A stretch of DNA of 11,941 nucleotides from Paraphysomonas bandaiensis (taxonomy: Eukaryota; Protista; Chrysophyceae): the NCBI GenBank assembly GCA_965644295.1, contig CBFFRP010000518.1, forward strand, positions 1 through 11,941. The letters run 5' to 3'. The notes below the pieces were generated by a model. That model worked only from the letters and a program-made list of their open reading frames with translations. It did not search any database and had not been told where the DNA came from. Positions 1,423 through 11,941 of the stretch are shown here, piece after piece; position 1 is the first letter of the stretch; each line of letters starts with the position of its first letter. Position numbers and translations under genes: made by a program.

Positions 1423-1851
1423 TGATTAGTTACAGGTAGAGGTCTAACTAGTTTGTCTAGCATTCATCTAGTTACTAAGTTGTGCAGGTTTTTAACGCCT
1501 ATTGCTTATTAATAAGACTTTCAATATAGTTTCGTCATTAACCGTTAGCTTAATTCGCGAAGAATGCTGCTTGATTTTCAATTGTTCTGATGAAAAAGGC
1601 GAGTAATTCACATGATTAACTTTCAAAGTAAACGATAACTAAACTCAGTAAGCAGAGCACTGAACTTATTAAATATTGTGATAAACATTTCCCATCATTC
1701 ACAGCAACTTATTGCATTGATTTGCTCCCCATCCACCAAAAAAGTACAATACTAAATAGCTGCGATCTCATATAGTCATCATATTTCATTTTATCTAATA
1801 TATTTCATCGCAATCATTCATCTTCGTTTAACAACGATCAACTCGCCCTTG

Positions 1852-3617
1852 TCAAGGCAATAACATGGCCGCTTTCAACATTGCTGGAAAATTAGGGGTT
1901 CCATAACCTACCCAGAGAGTATTAGTCATTTGGTCAGCTCTTAGACAGCATACATAGTTACCTGTAATGGGATCCCATCCCTCAGATGCCTGAAATCCAT
2001 CAGAACCACACCCTGGGTTGTTTCCACTCGTGACATCATTAAAAACCTCCGGGTGTGCGTATATAAAGGGGTTCAGAAAACCCATTGGCGACTTTCCAGC
2101 GCCTATTCGTGCGTCGTTGAGCATGGCGACGATACCTCCAAATGTTGGCGACGAGCAGCTGGTGCCGGCAACAGATGGGAGTGTCATACCGTTGTTAATT
2201 ACAACGTAGCCCGTGCCTTGAGCAGACACATCCGGAAAACCTCTGCCAGTGGAATTGTAAAGCTCAGGATCAGGAAGATAGCTCGCAGTGGAAAGGTATT
2301 CAGTGACAGCAAAATCTTGCCAGGCTGGACGGCGCCACCTGCACTTGTGTCAAAATAAACTACGGTACCTCTCAGATATTACTACCTATTAGAGAATCCT
2401 CCCGACGACAACTGTGCCCCTATTTCGGGATTGGAGGATGTCGTTGCTCCCACTGATGTAACGTATGGCGAGTCCGCCGGATACTGTGGAGTGAACGTGG
2501 TGCAGGGTCCAAACGCCGATCCAACTCCGCTATCTCCAGATGCAAAAATAAAGGAAATTCCCCTCAGGGAATTTTTCATAAACTCTTCATTCATTCTGGA
2601 GGCGTACTCCGACGAGACAGAAGCCTCATCCTCCCCATAGCTCGTGGAGAATACCAACGGTGGGTCCGATGTGTTGCCCAGCACATAGAGCCAGTCGAGA
2701 AAGGGTTCATTCTCGGTGTTATTAGGTTGGCGCCCAGCAAATGACCAGAACTCAGTTCGAACGCCTGCACCCAACGTAGACATGTATTCTACGTCTAGCG
2801 AGGCCTCAACACCGGCACCTTTACCATTCGGTCCCAATACCTCTGCGATGGGTGTTCCAAGTAGTTGAGGAAAGTATTGGTTATAGAAACTCTGTAGGTC
2901 AGCTTCTGAATAATACTGATGCAAAAAGGCGGTTACACCTATAACATTATTAGGCAATTATTACTATCATATCAGTAAACCTTGTCTAGTTGAAGATTTC
3001 CCCCCCATTGTGCTGCCCAGTCCGTAGAGTTCTCTCAAGCTATCGGGGGTATTTTGCTGTAAGTCAGTGGAATCTACCCCATTGTACGTAACACGAAGAG
3101 GACGGGGGAAGTTTACTGTGGGTGCGACGAAATCAACGTGATCAGCCACAGTTGTGGGGAGAGAATACTCCTCGCATCTCAATGTTTGTTGGCCAAGTCG
3201 TGAATGCATGTATGTACGATACGTTGCCGACAAAATTTTCTCAGCCGTACGGACAGCAACATGAGCTCTTAAAAAACCAGAAGATATACTGATGTTGTAA
3301 ACCCCAAATTCTCTGAGATATGAAGAAACAGCATCAAAAGACTCTGCTGGCGGCCTCACAATATTTTCTATATCCTCGAGACTAAGAAGTTTACCGTAGT
3401 TTTCACTTTTTGGAGACGAAATATCGATTAATCTGTGTTTGAGTTCCTCGATATTTCTGTGCTTGACAGCAAATGTCAATTCAATGAACTTCCCCTCAAC
3501 TGATGATTGACTGTCGACGATCCACTCCTTACCCCTCCGGGCGTCTGTTTCCAGGTAGCGACGACTCAGCACAAGAGAAACAAGCGCACTTAGAACGACA
3601 AGACGTAACGTCATCAT
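1852..3617 (-). CDS. TPP1: Tripeptidyl-peptidase I-like / sedolisin (peptidase family S53) preproenzyme, ~540 aa; exons 3617-2981, 2938-2386, 2338-1962, 1907-1852
   Basis: Signal peptide (MMTLRLVVLSALVSLVLS); activation prodomain (ISSPKSENYGKLLS, YSLP..VADHVDFV); catalytic Glu/Asp EASLDVEY; oxyanion Asp FASGDSG; GRGFPDVSA; catalytic Ser AGTSCSSP; Ca-binding tail DVTSGNNPGC..GWDPITGYGTPNF. GT-AG introns of 42, 47 and 54 nt give a continuous 1623-nt frame. Confidence 0.95.
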
Positions 3618-4196
3618 GATGATGACGGTTGGTTAGATATTGTGGCTGCCTTTTCAATTTTCTGCACCACTATCAGCACAAGAAAGGTCCTGTAATTTTC
3701 GTTAAATGCCTGTGCGAGGTGCCGTTCAGATCTTATCACATACAGCAAAACAACTTAACTTGGGGGGAGGGTATGTATATTGTGCTATCTTCGTAGCACA
3801 TATCTTTGTGTCTGTAATGTGTATGAAGAGTATTCCTACCATGCCATACATAGATACATAGGTAGGAACTACATACAATACAGAAGCTGCATACTCTGCA
3901 TACGCAAGTACAGCAAGTTGGTTGCGTTTTTCCCATTAACAAAGCTCGTGTAGTGGGTGTAGGTGGGAGGATTTTGTGTATGGTTGCTTGAAGAATATTA
4001 ATACAACGAACACCTACAGAGTGACAGAGTGCTAGAGTGGAGGAATCGTCTGTGAGGTGTATACGGACATACCATTAAACAAATTCTCCGTTTAATGTGG
4101 TGTATGATAACGCTGGGGATAGTATGAGTTAGAGCTTGTAAAATAATATTCTTTAACGTCGTATCCTTCCAGGCTGATAATTGAAACCTTTCCGAA
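3618..4196. promoter_or_regulatory. Divergent intergenic region (TPP1-like / MscS-like), probably including a spliced 5' UTR of the MscS gene
   Basis: Head-to-head genes 579 bp apart; plus-strand donor-like GTATGT at 3771 and pyrimidine-rich acceptor-like TCCTTCCAG ending at 4172, 25 nt before the ATG. Confidence 0.4.
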
Positions 4197-6463
4197 ATGC
4201 AGCCTCCATTCTCTGAGAAAAAAAACTGGGAGGATGAAATCTTGAATAACATCGAATGCCGAAAAGAAACTAACTCTTCGCAGGATAGTATCGGAACAGA
4301 TTCAGATGCTTTTATGTACCCGCTCTCAGGATATGGACGAAAATACTTTTTGGTACTCCCATCGAAACTCATTATAAGCATTTACTGCGCAATTAAACTT
4401 CGTGTGGTGCACTTTGCTTTCGTAGCAGTGGCTCTATGCCTGCTTCTCTATGCCCGGGGTGAATTTTCAGACAACCACTCTTATCTGTTGGGGGTATCTC
4501 CTAGAGACTGGGGAGAGTTCACTGTTGTAGTTTTTGTCATAGATATATGCACTGCAATAGCGGACCATCTTTTTCTTTTTTTATTCGAATCACTTTGGAT
4601 CGGTTCATATGAGGTTGTGTATTATATGTACTCCGTTCACGGACCTCTCGGTAGACTTCTGACTGTGGCCATCATAGTAAATTTTTTCTCTGGTATGAAA
4701 GTGCTGTCAACTGTGAGTAACATTCGACCCGTCGTGACTACCTTGATTGTCTTGGTAATTTTGTATACCGTAAAGGAGTACTTTATTCGCAAAAACTACA
4801 CCCGTTTGCTTGAACTACGCCTTAAAAGTCGGTTAACAGAAATTGAGCTATGGACGAATATTCTCTCTATTATTGCATGTAGACAGAGCATTCACGGAGA
4901 AGTAGGATCTGACGGGGAAGACTCTTTAGGCGGGGAGACCGGAGAGGTTGTCCTCTCTCCTATGCATGTGGGGGGAGGACGCCCAGAGCGACGACCCTCT
5001 GGAAAAGCACTATCTGTTGTTAACAAGGTATCCGACTTTTTCACCGATATGGCGAAGCAACAGGACACTGGCATGGACGAGGTCGAGATAGAAGAATGGG
5101 AGATGGAAGGCGACGCTGCGCATTCAAGTGGGAGAACATTTTGGCGAAGAGTACGCACCCTGAGAACGGGAAGTCTTAAGGTAACAACATGCTTTGGGAC
5201 AATAGTTATGCGGCGACGCAAACACGCTGTCTCCTTTGGGCGACAACTTTACCTGCACATGACCTGCGGTGGTACAAAGGTTTTTTCCGCTGCGATTCTT
5301 TGCGACCTGCTTCGATCGGCCTGCCAGTCTGGTGTTAGCCCATTCCTCAATCATGAAAATATAGAGGAAGAAGTTGTTAAGGCTGCACTAGAGCTGTTTC
5401 GTTTCAACGACGAGAGCAATGTGGAAGTCATCACGCAGGCAAAGGTTGTTGCTGGGATTGTGCGGGTTTTTAAGGAAATAAAATTTGCGGCGGCATCGTT
5501 GCATGATCTACAGAATCTGCATAGATCAGTGCTTAATATAGTAGACATTATATTCTGGATACTAATGTTTCTGGTTGCTCAAGCTATTCTTAAATTCGAC
5601 ACTTCAGAGATGCTGGCTCCTTTGTTAACAGTCCTGTTTGGCCTTTCCTTCGCCTTTGGGCCCGTTGTTGCTAATATATTCATGTCTGTGGCGTTCGTAA
5701 TGCTAATGCTACCATTCGACGTCGGTAACAGGGTGGTGATTGGACGGGACCAGACAACAGGAATAGTTGGAAATATTATATCTATCTGTCTCATGCACAC
5801 CACAATACTAACCAGGTTTAACGAAAAAGTGAGTTGTTTGTGAGCTTTGTAAGAGTACTATTTGTTATTCATCTGTGTGTTTAGTTGAGAATTCCTAATC
5901 ACACGCTCTTCCATGAAAAGATTATTAATCTGAATGAGAGCAATGCATCTACATTTGAAATATTGGTAGACTTTGCACTGGACGGTCCACACGCTGTTTC
6001 TGCGGTTCGTATCTGTCTGTATATGCACAGCTGCTACTTGTTCGAGGAATGTTTCAATACTTAATTTGTTTGATAGTCGACGATATCGGATTACTGCAAG
6101 GTGCTGGAAAGGTATTGTAAGGTAGAAAAGAAGTCTGAATGGTCTGACCTGACAGTCTTCAACTACGGTTTGAGTTATCCTTCTAACACTATCAAGTACG
6201 GTATATGGGCTACGCACAAGGGAAGCTGGCACGAAGTAGGTCGTGTGCATGCATGTACATCGCACAAATCATATGTTGTGCAGGTGAACAGAGTTTGGTA
6301 CGCAAGGGGAGCGCTACTCGATCGCATGAGGCAGGCACAGTTAGACCTGGGCATCAAATACATGAAGCTAACGGACCCTGTTCACATCTCCGGTTCAGTA
6401 GAAGGAAAGATGCAACGTGGTCCACCAGCACCAGAAACTAATTCAGACTCTACATTGTGGTGA
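4197..6463 (+). CDS. MscS-like (eukaryotic MSL/Msy-type) mechanosensitive ion channel, ~696 aa; exons 4197-5828, 5885-6004, 6077-6235, 6284-6463
   Basis: Four N-terminal hydrophobic helices, a long cytosolic loop, then TM helices with GLSFAFG..ANIFMSVAFV, the MscS motifs PFDVGNRVVIG and ICLMHTT, and (after splicing) LRIPNHTL..KIINLNES. GT-AG introns of 56, 72 and 48 nt keep frame. The in-frame TGA at 4182 supports ATG 4197 as the start. Confidence 0.9.
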
Positions 6464-7203
6464 GTTCGCTGCATTAATTTGGTGTCATTCTTTCTACAAG
6501 AGACCAAAGACAATTTCTTTAAATGTGCACAATATTTGGTTTAGGGTTCAGTCTGCCTTGTTAGTGCTATACATACTTAGGTGTACTAATTTCTATTATC
6601 ATTTTCATTTCAATGAAGAAGGCATTATTAATCTTTTACGTAAGAGTACAGAACTCCGTAAACACACACCCAATTCAGTTTATGATAAACATTTCATTAA
6701 ACCGATGTACGACAGCATTTATTTAGCCACTGTATTCTTATCTAATTTTTACAGTTCAAAAACCTTAAACAACAGTATTTAATTGTTCAAAGAGCAGCTC
6801 AACATCTGTTATGAGAAATGTTTTGTGGCCGTTACAAAGAAGATGTATATCTACTTAGGGATCGTTTTCTGTGTTGATGGCGTACGACAATCCAATGTTA
6901 TCACTTTCAATGATTGCGTTGATGCGGCAACACAAAAGAGCTGCACGGAACTGATGTTATCATACTCTCCGTGGCATTCTACCTACTTATTTTAGTGCTT
7001 TATAACGATTAAGTTGAAGCGCTATAAGCAACTACAAGGCCGTGGCTACCAAATCATTTAGAAGAAAAATGTTTAAACAAGAGCAAACAATGCGGCACTG
7101 GCTCTCTTAAAGGTAGCTTTTTTTTTTTCAAGAATGCAATGTATCCTGATTAAATTACACAATCAAACACTCTGTATAAAAACTATTTTCGCATGCCTCA
7201 GTA

Positions 7204-8259
7204 TTAAGGTGTTATGAGTGCAGCTTTGGCATCATTCCACTTTTCTTCAAACATTCTTTTTAGTTCTACAGCTTTTTCATGTTGAGGAGCGTCAGGACTA
7301 TAATATAGCGTCACATTGTTGAACATGGTGTGGAAATCTCTTTCGAAGGCTTCTGGGGTACTATACATACCATTTTCGAGCCTTTCCTGCATGTGAGGCG
7401 GAGCTTAAAGCCAATAAAACAGAATAGTACAGAATAGATTCATACCTTTATATTCCGTAGAGTACATTCCTGCATAACTTTCTCATAGAAACCCGGAAGT
7501 TGAATTCGTTCACAGTTTTCTCTGGTTATAATGCTAAAGAAAGGAATAGCAATACTGGGTTCCATTTCTAAATCCCAGAATCCATCGAATATCTTCTGGA
7601 GGACCGGTTGAAGAATTTCAGGCCTCACAACTGTGCCAGTTTGGGCAGGCTGCTCTGTTTGCCGCCTGCGGCTAGGACGAAACCGCTTCCGGGCAGCAGC
7701 AAGACTCTCCTCATCGTTCTCCTCATCGGACAAGATTGTGTTACGTGCAATATTGCTGCCGGATGACATTGAGGGCTGACGACGTTTTCGGTCAGTAGAG
7801 CGTGTAGTAGAGGGAAGAGGCTTTCGAGCTCCCGACCGGCCAATACTTGGAGGAGGTTGAGAATCATGAACGATATGCTGCACTCTGGTATCGGGCTTCA
7901 CTGGGTCGATTTGAAGGCGAGACAAATAGTCTGCAGATATCTGTTTAGATACACCAGTTATATTTTGAGCTAAACAACCTTTAGGGAATAGTTCAATACG
8001 TGCATCAAATGAAGATAAAGCGATGTCCAAGAGGCCTATTTCTGGTATGAATACAGAGTTGAAACAACCACTATATGTTACCAGCTGGAATCCGTTTCTC
8101 ATCTTCTGATAGACTGAACGGTCTGATTAAATGGTCCAGTCCTTTCTCCATTTTCTTCTTGGCATACTGACTTGTTTCAGCGAAATGCTCTCGATAATGT
8201 AAAATGTCATATTTTTTAAGTACAGCTGTCACAGCATCTGCTGAGTTTGTTGACGACAT
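7204..8259 (-). CDS. C-terminal bromodomain-containing protein (atypical), ~318 aa; exons 8259-8082, 8041-7446, 7386-7204
   Basis: The spliced product contains AIPF...LPGFYEKV..ECTLRNIK|ERLENGMYSTPEAFERDFHTMFNNVTLYYSPDAPQHEKAVELKRMFEEKW, which follows the bromodomain pattern (PF..P.YY..I..PMDL..I..RL....Y.....F..D..L.F.N...YN). Basic NLS-like RKRR and RKRFRPSRRR segments. GT-AG introns of 40 and 59 nt join three listed ORFs in frame. Confidence 0.85.
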
Positions 8260-8721
8260 GCTCTGCTCACTCTATTCCGTAAGTAATTAACCCTAAGCAT
8301 GCATTGTGTCACTTTTCCGAGCTATTAACAAGGTGATCGGTATATTGGTACACGTACACTGGTAGACGTACACACGTACACCTGGTACAGCGGTACTCCG
8401 TGCTGCTACTGTGTGGAATCGAATCACGTGTACAGTACGTATTCCATTCTGCTGTATTTCTGTATATGAAAAGTCATCAAAATATCTACTCTTGCTTCAA
8501 AAAAATATTCCGGACAGGGATAAAGGGTGCACCTACACATATGTACATATATGTACTGTATGTACAGGAGATCGCTTTACAACGTTATTATTACTCCATC
8601 AGCATTACGACAGAGCTCCAGGACTGCTGGTCATTTCTGGTAAACCTTGGCGCCATGATTTATACCCATTGTCCTGGTGCCCTTATCTTTCCCTGTTCCA
8701 CTGAGGTTCGTTTGTAATCAG
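8260..8721. promoter_or_regulatory. Divergent intergenic/promoter region between the bromodomain and PHD-C2 genes, with a GTAC cluster
   Basis: Head-to-head ATGs 462 bp apart; 11 GTAC tetramers in 8348-8565; TAACCCTAA at 8288-8296. Confidence 0.5.
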
Positions 8722-11379
8722 ATGCCATTTTTTTCCCACAAGGCGGAATCATTGACGAAAGCATCGACTAAGTCGACAGCGGTGTCTATTATTCAGAATT
8801 CTATACAAGAAGCAAAGAAAGTTGATGCATGGATCCCTCCTGTAAGGATTCATAATTTTGCGAAGAGAAACGTCTTGTGTGAAGTGTGCCGAGAGCCGAT
8901 ATCATTCTGTCCTTCGTTGGACGCACACTGTTCCGTTTGCAATGTGGTGGCTCATATTGTATGCTTGACTAAAGAACAGCGCAAGAACAACTTTAGGAAC
9001 AATTGGATATGTACGAAATATACTTGTACTTTCAATTCATGAGTATGTCGTGGTACAGGTGATGATTGCTCAGATGACTTGGCGGACAGCAAGTCACATT
9101 ACGTGAGTTGTAGATCAAAAAAAAATTATGAGGTACGATACGACTTGTTGACTATTGTACCAACCAGTAGTTCGTACAATGCTGACATAGGAGGCGACTC
9201 ATAGAGCTCAGGCTCTTATAGCGAAAACATGGCGGAGATATCAACACATTAGATTGTACAAACACACACTGAAATATGTCTTGAAACTTCAAGGTAATAC
9301 ATTGTGCTTTATGCTGATGATAGCAGTTATCTCAGTGATGTAAAATTCAGGAATTGGCCGTATGATACACCGGAAGAATATGTTATTGCAATATCGACGT
9401 ACATTGATGCGGCCACTCGGAGTACGTATTACACGTTGCTCTAATCTTCAGTTCGATCCCGACTCATCCGAGCAGCCGGTACGTATCCTATCTTCTGGCT
9501 GTAGAACCATATGTACAAAATTCAAATGGATCTCTTGATGCCTTGTAGCAGACTTGTAATCCTTTTGTGTATATCTCGACATCTGACACCCGAGAAATAT
9601 CGAGCCAAATTTGGCTCAAGCATACCACAGTGGTGTGGGGCAACGAGGACCCTGAATACAATGAAGATTTTATAGTTCCTGGTATCAATGGAAACCAGTC
9701 GGTGGGTATATATTGTGTCTCAAACTTTTACACTACTGATTAATTTGGATTGTTTTGGCAGGTGGTATTCACTGTAGTGTGCAAGACAGACCGCAAGCAC
9801 AAGTTTATGGGACAGGCCGTTTTGGACCTGTCATTTAAAAATCTTTGGTGTAGGGGTGGATCGTTCATGCTTCCCCTGAGGTCTGTTCAGGTACAATTGG
9901 CTATCGTTGAACATTTGAGTTCGTTGATTGCTAATTTTTTGCGAACAGTACATTCTCCAGGAACACAAGATGCCAATACCCCTAGACTATTCTGCGGTTG
10001 AGCCATCTGGCACACTCGAGGTGGGTTTTGTATAACCACATCTTCGCAATATGATGTGTGTTGTAGGTTCAGCTCTTTCCTCTTACTTCCATCGATAATT
10101 TCTGTGGGCGCGTGTATGGACCACGGTGGGTGCATCTTATGGACGTATTTGTTGTCTGTGTGCCTACCCGATGATCCATATGTACTATGTGTCAAGTAAG
10201 CGATGCATGCAGCATTTCAGATCTTATGATCGCTTTTCGTGATCTCTCTGCTAATCACTCAGAACATCGCGACCCAGGTGATATGCTAGTTGAATTCATA
10301 AAATTTTTGAGGTCCTATTCTTAGAAAACAAAGCAGTTTTTGGGGAGGGGCTTGCGGCAGATTCGAAGAGGATTCGTAAATCTACTTTGTGGCTCGTTCT
10401 CACTGGTGGAAGAATATATTTACACGACGAGTAATTAAATACATCGTCGTAATTGTTTTCGTATGATGGCTGTATTTAACTACTCAGACTTGGAGAGCCA
10501 TGCAGAATGTTTATTGACTTGAAGCTGACTACTGTGCAGGCGAAGAATCGATTTGATACCTTGTGGTATGTATATAGGCATGTATGCTCCGCTATTCGTA
10601 AGGCTCTTACTTGTAGGTTTGATATAAAGATTGATGGGTGTCCTACACTAAAATTCGCTGCTACTGACAGGTTCGACGAAAACAGATTCAAGGTGATGCC
10701 GAATTTTTTTTTCTAATTTTTAATTGCAATATCACAGGCTGCTATGATGAGTGCTTGGAGAAAGTCGAAGGTATGTAGGTTTCAGTTGACAACCCTGGTT
10801 GAAGACTTGATTCACATTCGACTCCTCAAAAAGCAAGCCGACGAAGACAGCTCTCGTCCCGGTAGAAATCTGAATGCCACACGAGTGCACATAGCACACC
10901 CAAACCCACTGAGACGGCGTCGAGGGACATCCTTTTTACCGTCCATTGCTGAGAAATATTCTGTGCTTGATGGAGAATATGCGCGCAAGAAATCTACAGA
11001 AAGTACAAATGATTGTTTGACGTCGCTATCTTCAACTAAACTGAAGTTACTGCACCCATTGGTAATTCCTGACGTTGAAGTGTTACCTGAGGCTTCCAAA
11101 CATATTTCGACACTATCTAGTCCTAAACGTAACTGCGAAACAAAAATTATCTGTAGGCAATCCCCAAAAAAGTCGTCAAATAGGTCGATATTAACCTCAT
11201 TGACACCATCTCCGAAGAAGTCCGTTGCTAGGAATTCTATTTGTAGGCGAAACGGGAAAGTGTTTTTTCAAGACGACATGGATACGTACGATAAAGGCCA
11301 TAACATACTCCGTACCAGCCCTGCTCATGCTAATAGGGATGTCCCAGTTGCAGAAAGTAAGGGTAGACGTAAACAGTCG
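8722..11379 (+). CDS. Multidomain PHD-type Zn finger / IQ motif / C2 / PH-like protein, >=658 aa, 3'-truncated by telomere (no stop); exons 8722-9010, 9059-9132, 9191-9293, 9351-9478, 9549-9701, 9762-9890, 9949-10020, 10067-10125, 10213-10277, 10325-10430, 10488-10565, 10617-10692, 10738-11379
   Basis: Twelve GT-AG introns (45-87 nt) give one continuous frame. It contains CEVC-x13-CSVC-x4-H-x2-C...WICDDC (C4HC3), IQ-like AQALIAKTWRRY..KLQGIGR, C2 (LGVRITRCSNL, CNPFVYI, TTVVWGNEDPEYNEDF, VVFTVV...KFMGQAVLDL), PH-like (LWLVLTGGRIYL...FDIKI...LKFAATD..DENRFKAAM), and a basic Ser-rich tail with SPKR/SPKK. Exons 8-9 are the least certain. Confidence 0.8.
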
Positions 11380-11929
11380 TTAGGGTTAGGGTTAGGGTTA
11401 GGGTTAGGGTTAGGGTTAGGGTTAGGGTTAGGGTTAGGGTTAGGGTTAGGGTTAGGGTTAGGGTTAGGGTTAGGGTTAGGGTTAGGGTTAGGGTTAGGGT
11501 TAGGGTTAGGGTTAGGGTTAGGGTTAGGGTTAGGGTTAGGGTTAGGGTTAGGGTTAGGGTTAGGGTTAGGGTTAGGGTTAGGGTTAGGGTTAGGGTTAGG
11601 GTTAGGGTTAGGGTTAGGGTTAGGGTTAGGGTTAGGGTTAGGGTTAGGGTTAGGGTTAGGGTTAGGGTTAGGGTTAGGGTTAGGGTTAGGGTTAGGGTTA
11701 GGGTTAGGGTTAGGGTTAGGGTTAGGGTTAGGGTTAGGGTTAGGGTTAGGGTTAGGGTTAGGGTTAGGGTTAGGGTTAGGGTTAGGGTTAGGGTTAGGGT
11801 TAGGGTTAGGGTTAGGGTTAGGGTTAGGGTTAGGGTTAGGGTTAGGGTTAGGGTTAGGGTTAGGGTTAGGGTTAGGGTTAGGGTTAGGGTTAGGGTTAGG
11901 GTTAGGGTTAGGGTTAGGGTTAGGGTTAG
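11380..11929 (+). repeat. Telomeric array (TTAGGG)91 + TTAG, G-rich strand running 5'->3' toward the end
   Basis: 546 nt of uninterrupted TTAGGG (11380-11925) plus TTAG; correct orientation for a right-hand chromosome end. Confidence 0.98.
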
Positions 11930-11941
11930 AGCAATACATGT
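11930..11941 (+). other. Probable Oxford Nanopore ligation-adapter remnant (technical)
   Basis: AGCAATAC matches the first 8 nt of the read-end adapter sequence AGCAATACGTAAC... (reverse complement of ...GTTACGTATTGCT); the last 4 nt diverge. Confidence 0.7.

Follow-up and report, generated by a model that had tools for sequence, protein, structure and literature searches.

Why does an open protein-coding exon run straight into a telomere, and what became of the rest of the gene? The question is raised by contig CBFFRP010000518.1 of the colourless marine chrysophyte flagellate Paraphysomonas bandaiensis (C518; assembly GCA_965644295.1), one of the 669 contigs of a 62.5 Mb assembly, which was analysed in full and is called the window here (11,941 nucleotides (nt), forward strand). 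Near its right end the last exon of a gene for a C2-domain protein gives way to perfect TTAGGG repeats. The gene continues in other strains, the DNA beyond the join is absent from the assembly, and the bases GTTAG are common to gene and telomere at the point of joining. Taken together, these observations make it probable that the end is a strain-specific terminal deletion that was healed by telomerase.

Contigs of four public runs were aligned to positions 8400-11400 of the window, among them DNA contigs of an independent strain (X4, 2020), transcript contigs of 2015 (X10) and contigs of another sample from the same study (X6). With these, and with a Joint Genome Institute (JGI) transcript contig (L074), the features of the join are placed as follows:

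8598..11383, + strand: part of the gene kept in the assembled strain, 13 exons and 12 introns, from the spliced transcript contig of X10 and from L074, aligned exon by exon
10738..11379, + strand: last exon, 214 codons, no stop, from the open frame and the acceptor set by the spliced transcript
11379..11383, + strand: GTTAG common to gene and telomere, from the X4 and X10 alignments, which stop at 11383, L074:2130-2150 and the window sequence
11380..11929, + strand: terminal telomere, 92 perfect TTAGGG units, from reading the sequence and from Tandem Repeats Finder
11930..11941, + strand: non-genomic tail AGCAATACATGT; contigs C514, C579 and C467 end in a longer version of it after their telomeres

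The start codon of the gene lies at 8722, and its 12 introns, taken from the X10 transcript contig and checked in the window, all have GT..AG borders and measure 45-87 nt. The JGI transcript contig gives the same exon structure except for one retained intron, and the intact protein (P0005) aligns to C518:8722-11388. As the initial annotation had read it, the last exon is open over 214 codons up to AAA CAG TCG and is followed by perfect TTAGGG repeats, on which the sequence and Tandem Repeats Finder agree; the frame itself goes on through the repeats as TTA GGG. Equally borne out in the sequence is that the join has no stop codon, no 3' untranslated region (UTR), no subtelomeric repeat and no degenerate proximal zone. 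The exon is identical to residues 279-492 of P0003, a protein found by an exhaustive representative protein search, which correspond to residues 444-657 of P0005. A frameshifting intron from a donor at 10771, which might have ended the gene upstream, falls away, as the spliced transcript contig puts the exon start at 10738 and contains no further intron. The switch to telomere had been placed at 11380, and it is as abrupt as described, but divergence from the intact allele begins only after 11383, GTTAG being common to both.

In the independent strain X4, a 10,174-nt DNA contig matches the window over 8400-11383 and then extends a further 281 nt, all unique sequence. Past 11383 the X10 transcript contig has another 177 nt with the same letters as X4, beginning TATTGCTACC; the JGI transcript contig goes 229 nt beyond the break and supplies 57 further codons, a TAA stop (L074:2314-2316) and a 3' UTR of 59 nt. 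At the join the intact allele reads CAGTCGTTAG followed by TATTGC, and the assembled strain reads CAGTCGTTAG followed by GGTTAGGG. P0005, the intact protein, is 714 residues long, and the copy of the assembled strain ends at residue 657; in P0003, too, 57 amino acids (aa) follow the residues KQS. Of a gene whose intact form is transcribed in other strains, as the X10 and L074 contigs show, the assembled strain is therefore missing the final 57 codons with the stop codon, and also the 3' UTR.

The missing part was not found elsewhere in the 62.5 Mb assembly. Searches of the assembly contigs, by which the absence is defined, returned neither the distal 232 nt, nor a distal 30-mer (up to 3 mismatches), nor the 57-aa tail, and by the same searches a distal fragment with a telomere cap is also absent. 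The gene is single-copy in the assembly, and bases 1530-11379 of the window occur in it once. Exact look-ups of a 548-aa neighbouring open reading frame, of P0003 and of the predicted genomic reading frame P0003:281-549 gave no match to a genomic contig of an intact strain. The proposal of the initial annotation that a break inside a coding exon had been healed is thus upheld by the intact allele of other strains and by the lack of the distal DNA in the assembly; that the end is derived rests on this comparison of strains and not on its anatomy. The telomere was added at GTTAG, a microhomology, and the original DNA end lay within 11378-11383.

The contigs of X6 speak for the state of the culture. 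One of them spans 11167-11390, with telomere letters at 11384-11390 and a word depth of 17.8, compared to 22.8 upstream. No branch toward the intact form is listed among the X6 contigs at 11383, and at the two single-nucleotide polymorphisms (SNPs) of the intact X4/X10 haplotype, 11172 and 11181, the alternative depth in X6 is zero. The assembled culture therefore seems to hold the truncated haplotype only. The many single-base deletions in X6 suggest that it is of the noisy long-read type.

How might such an end have been made? In the lineage of the assembled culture the chromosome would have broken or eroded within the last exon, exposing a 3' end in GTTAG. This end may have annealed to the alignment region of the template in the telomerase RNA, after which telomerase could have added TTAGGG repeats directly; with the distal DNA, the last 57 codons and their TAA stop would have been lost, together with the 3' UTR and anything beyond, and the truncated end would then have become fixed in the culture. 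TTAG is complementary to CUAA, the 3' end of a candidate template (CUAACCCUAA, described below), and copying the remainder of that template yields GGTTAG, as observed. Direct joins with short or no homology occur at 12 or more other places in the genome (for example C363:698543, and in C442, C368, C244, C583 and C573), indicating that the process is recurrent. That telomerase, and not recombination, made the new telomere is what we infer. The telomere-like pentamers TAGGG at 11334 and AGGGT at 11360 were also considered as addition seeds, but this idea is post hoc and weak, and we do not claim it.

The array itself is uniform. Tandem Repeats Finder gives 11379-11929, period 6, 91.8 copies, 100% matches and 0 indels, and the G-rich strand runs outward, 5' to 3', toward the contig end. 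The last 12 bases of the window are neither telomere nor genome, and like the tails behind the terminal telomeres of C514, C579 and C467 (L070, L071 and L073) they resemble AGCAATACGTAACTGAACGAAGT. We take the 12-nt tail to be untrimmed nanopore ligation adapter. It looks like a sequencing-adapter remnant that contaminates the assembly, yet it marks the ends of molecules, so the window ends at the physical end of a sequenced molecule and about 550 nt is the real length of the telomere.

Is such a join exceptional in this genome? The initial annotation had suggested a survey of telomere-capped contigs. The whole assembly was surveyed, in six registers, for non-telomere bases with four or more repeats behind them, and about 60 flanks were read. 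Sharp joins of unique DNA to telomere turned out to be common genome-wide. Neither a subtelomeric repeat family nor a degenerate proximal zone was found among the ~60 flanks read; the flanks are mutually unrelated, and the only recurring sequences are short retroelement fragments of 45-130 nt. Because sharp joins are normal here, abruptness alone is no sign of a recent event. The earlier step from a sharp join without a subtelomere to a recent break accordingly lacks support, about 50 other sampled joins being equally sharp.

The survey brought out a second regularity. At most joins, a short tag of consensus CACCCAAACTATTCGA and variable 5' extent stands directly before the first TTAGGG. Among 33 joins chosen solely for a non-G base before TTAGGG, 22 match the tag exactly over 4-16 nt, evenly spread over that range, and two more have it with 5 nt skipped inside. 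The 14-mer CTATTCGATTAGGG has 103 copies in the genome, compared to 0 for the reversed control. About 100 tag sites are internal, often deep in large contigs, with 1-5 repeats after which unrelated DNA follows. Examples of the tag are:

C135:38745-38763
C440:71604-71622
C649:3926-3944
C164:167729-167747
C297:928478-928491
C573:1948-1966, - strand

In form, the tag looks like the product of healing and break repair templated by telomerase RNA, similar to the telomerase RNA component interstitial telomeric sequences (TERC-ITS) of vertebrates. At two joins, C208:125957 and C214:90112 (L021 and L022), the tag has an internal 5-nt skip and reads CCAAACTA directly followed by TTAGGG, with its last five bases, TTCGA, missing, as if the enzyme had slipped on TT.

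A candidate template for both repeat and tag is present at one locus of the assembly:

C144:108460-108780 (L076:150-470), - strand: candidate telomerase RNA gene, single copy, recognised by template and tag complement

The order at this locus is GGAUGCAU-CUAACCCUAA-UCGAAUAGUUUGGGUG, in which CUAACCCUAA would be a 10-nt template of 1.67 repeats; the letters after it are exactly complementary to the tag. A hairpin lies directly 5' of the template; downstream there is a stem, CAGUCGGG/CCCGCUG, with a U-rich loop, with which the A-run AAAACAAAAAA could pair in a pseudoknot-like manner, and a long-range helix encloses the whole candidate region. The Rfam model of vertebrate telomerase RNA matches at this place and on this strand, but weakly (15 bits, E 0.19); for its fold, the candidate has a z-score of -1.24. 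A long (TGTA)n microsatellite lies ~200 nt upstream. Judged by its sequence, the C144 locus is a good but unproven candidate, and more probably than otherwise it is the telomerase RNA gene. If it is, the tags would equal the telomerase RNA next to the template, and the join in the window would be without a tag because its exposed end had paired with the template itself. In the literature that we found, the only stramenopile telomerase RNA candidates were those of Blastocystis, obtained by a search based on RNA polymerase III (Pol III) promoters (PMC8287931).

Other ends differ in detail. A 45-60 nt fragment, TACGCTGTCCCCCGATAGCTCCTTACCCATTTGAGGTGTGGA, lies between two telomere tracts at C325:26700-26760 and C12:110830-110896, and also in C579, C467 and C80 (L012, L016, L036, L028 and L039); presumably it comes from a 5'-truncated, telomere-primed Penelope-like retroelement. 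At C439:2142-2440 (L047:10-300, - strand) a coding-looking frame of 97 codons runs toward a tag-bearing telomere and ends in the splice-donor-like GGTATGTGT just before the join; here a telomere may have cut a further gene, although Pfam gave nothing significant for the frame. In a Pfam search, the open frames abutting five other telomeres had no significant domain, and we therefore make no claim that other ends truncate genes.

These results bear on several other ways in which the end could have arisen. Break-induced replication, or capture of a telomere through GTTAG homology with another chromosome end, would also produce a perfect array from short homology. Five bases, however, are very short for homology-driven capture, and captured ends would often carry retroelement fragments or variant units, which are seen in other arrays and are lacking here; signs of telomerase acting on non-telomeric ends are moreover abundant, in the form of tags that match the candidate telomerase RNA at most joins. 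Recombination is thus an unlikely source of this telomere. A mixed state, in which an intact copy persists in the culture or in a diploid cell and was dropped by the assembler and the contig sets, would fit the tendency of contigs to lose rare variants, and word depth does fall from 22.8 to ~17 over the final 200 nt. With no X6 branch at 11383, no depth for the alternative bases at 11172 and 11181, and no distal DNA in the assembly, we hold it to be quite unlikely. As for an artefact, the contig is tiny and ends in adapter, so its end rests on few reads, and a chimeric read or a misassembly might have joined unique DNA to telomere repeats. The initial annotation had singled out one chimeric read as a possible origin, which is contradicted by the X6 contig of repeated words that crosses the join at a word depth of ~18, near that of its flank, and by the absence of the distal sequence from the entire assembly; the join also coincides precisely with five nucleotides that the gene has in common with the repeat. 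An artefact is very unlikely on this evidence.

The initial annotation had also raised programmed or pervasive fragmentation of the chromosomes, should many contigs end in this way. If programmed, it would be developmentally regulated, as it is in the macronuclei of ciliates or in the DNA elimination of nematodes, with the exon as a regular breakage site. Many telomere-bearing contigs are indeed small (5-18 kb), joins are sharp genome-wide, and a short conserved tag adjoins most telomeres. But the small size of C518 comes from its other end, where the contig breaks off in a dispersed repeat of at least 150 copies, and the tag is absent both at its join and in the intact sequence around the break, where no shared breakage signal is seen. 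The graded extent of the tag (4-16 nt) and its ~100 internal sites with 1-5 repeats fit templated synthesis and not a cis-acting signal; a capped distal fragment was not found in the assembly, and other strains express the gene in its intact form. On the coexistence of germline and somatic forms, the X6 contigs show the capped form alone, and contigs may miss a rare intact form. The idea of a programmed break is not supported and is very unlikely, the least probable of those considered.

Some points weigh against a strain-specific deletion healed by telomerase, even so. Recombination-based capture would yield an identical product. The X4 contig ends 281 nt beyond the break, which is ~50 nt further than the transcript contig reaches; it could stop at a repeat or even at a natural telomere, so that the natural end may be near and the loss small. 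The runs were seen as contigs, beyond whose reach lie the number of molecules, intact molecules at low frequency and a possible scatter in the points of addition. X6 is possibly raw data of the same assembly project, in which case it confirms depth and not an independent culture, and the comparison covers four public runs, X4, X6 and X10 among them, none of which is one of the source sample's own, X1 and X2.

What would the telomere-healed deletion have cost the cell? Of the label PHD-IQ-C2-PH given to the gene earlier, the C2 domain is clear (Pfam, E 4e-8), matches to C1/PHD-like zinc fingers are weak and below the Pfam cut-off, and a PH domain was not detected by Pfam in the protein. A protein identical to the gene product carries the label MMETSP1103, taxon 36769. 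Homologues of the full protein were not found outside its own cluster, and the comparison of orthologue lengths is one among conspecific strains only. With neither a stop codon nor a polyadenylation signal, the truncated copy is probably a dead or crippled allele. Because its frame, in addition, is open through the telomere, its transcript is likely to meet non-stop decay or silencing, a prediction made from the sequence. A paralogue lies on C432:323080-325960 (+ strand); its zinc-finger and C2 regions are 56-60% identical to those of the truncated gene, and its C-terminus is weakly similar. It could buffer the loss of the C518 copy.

The remainder of the window holds two neighbouring genes and the repeat at which the assembly stops. 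At 1852-3617 (- strand) lies a sedolisin-type peptidase gene (Pro-kumamolisin activation domain, E 7.5e-32; S8 weak), and at 4197-5843 (+ strand) the gene of an MscS-type mechanosensitive channel (P0001, 603 aa, PF00924), to which an MMETSP transcript is 100% identical. Bases 1-1530 are occupied by the dispersed repeat, which accounts for the left end of the contig. Of this, bases 1085-1528 have ~40 copies of 80-89% identity among the matches listed, and bases 2-261 match the same dispersed elements in inverse orientation, with identity of up to 97%. The repeat is probably a transposon with inverted ends.

The event in the window is a clean but ordinary healing event of a well-known kind. What makes it valuable is that the intact allele is available and the join can be read to the base pair, in a lineage without a described telomere biology: our literature search returned nothing relevant on chrysophyte telomere biology or on the genome or telomeres of Paraphysomonas. 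For annotators, it follows that sharp joins of gene and telomere in this genome are neither misassembly nor proof of a recent event, and that the strain behind the reference assembly is without the end of at least one gene expressed in other strains. It is possible, and we put it forward tentatively, that chromosome ends in Paraphysomonas are unusually plastic, most of them being telomerase-healed breaks, and that ~100 internal breaks per genome were patched as well, each leaving a 4-16 nt tag copied from the telomerase RNA beside the template. If this is true, the window is a strain-level snapshot of the ongoing trimming or truncation of terminal genes, and the tag is a readable, genome-wide record of telomerase-mediated repair that leads directly to a telomerase RNA in ochrophyte stramenopiles, from which none is known so far. 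More novel than the healing event itself are the tag found across the genome and the putative telomerase RNA gene, which, if confirmed, would form the densest known record of telomerase as a break-repair enzyme.

How does this compare to known systems? Programmed breakage is familiar from the Cbs of Tetrahymena, the E-Cbs of Euplotes and the DNA elimination of Ascaris. The Paraphysomonas end resembles these in having a telomere on unique DNA without subtelomeric repeats, but no cis signal, distal fragment or duality of germline and soma is seen at the site, and the break varies between strains and not between nuclei. Endonuclease-deficient Penelope-like retroelements associated with telomeres are also a known class, and other Paraphysomonas ends are similar in having short fragments between telomere tracts, whereas the end of the window has none.

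A closer parallel for the tag is found in vertebrate TERC-ITS. There, telomerase is reported to start from a non-telomeric end that is paired 3' of the RNA template, to copy this stretch and to add repeats, leaving inserts at double-strand breaks (PMC2246262; PMC8537989), and 41 such loci are given across 22 vertebrate species (PMC8537989). If C144 encodes the telomerase RNA, it is common to both that a copy of template-adjacent RNA, variable in length, precedes the repeats between unrelated flanks. In Paraphysomonas, by contrast, 103 copies of one 14-mer form are present in a single 62.5 Mb genome, and the tag also starts most true terminal telomeres, the join in the window being one without it.

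For the join itself, the nearest relatives are terminal deletions with de novo telomere addition. Chromosome healing is known from the human 16p deletions in alpha-thalassaemia, from subtelomeric gene truncations in Plasmodium falciparum and from repeated telomere-addition sites in yeast. As in such cases, unique or coding DNA is joined directly to perfect repeats, a few bases are homologous to the telomerase template, the intact allele exists elsewhere and the distal DNA is lost. The differences are that the host is a heterotrophic chrysophyte and that, in the Paraphysomonas genome, healed-looking joins are the rule.

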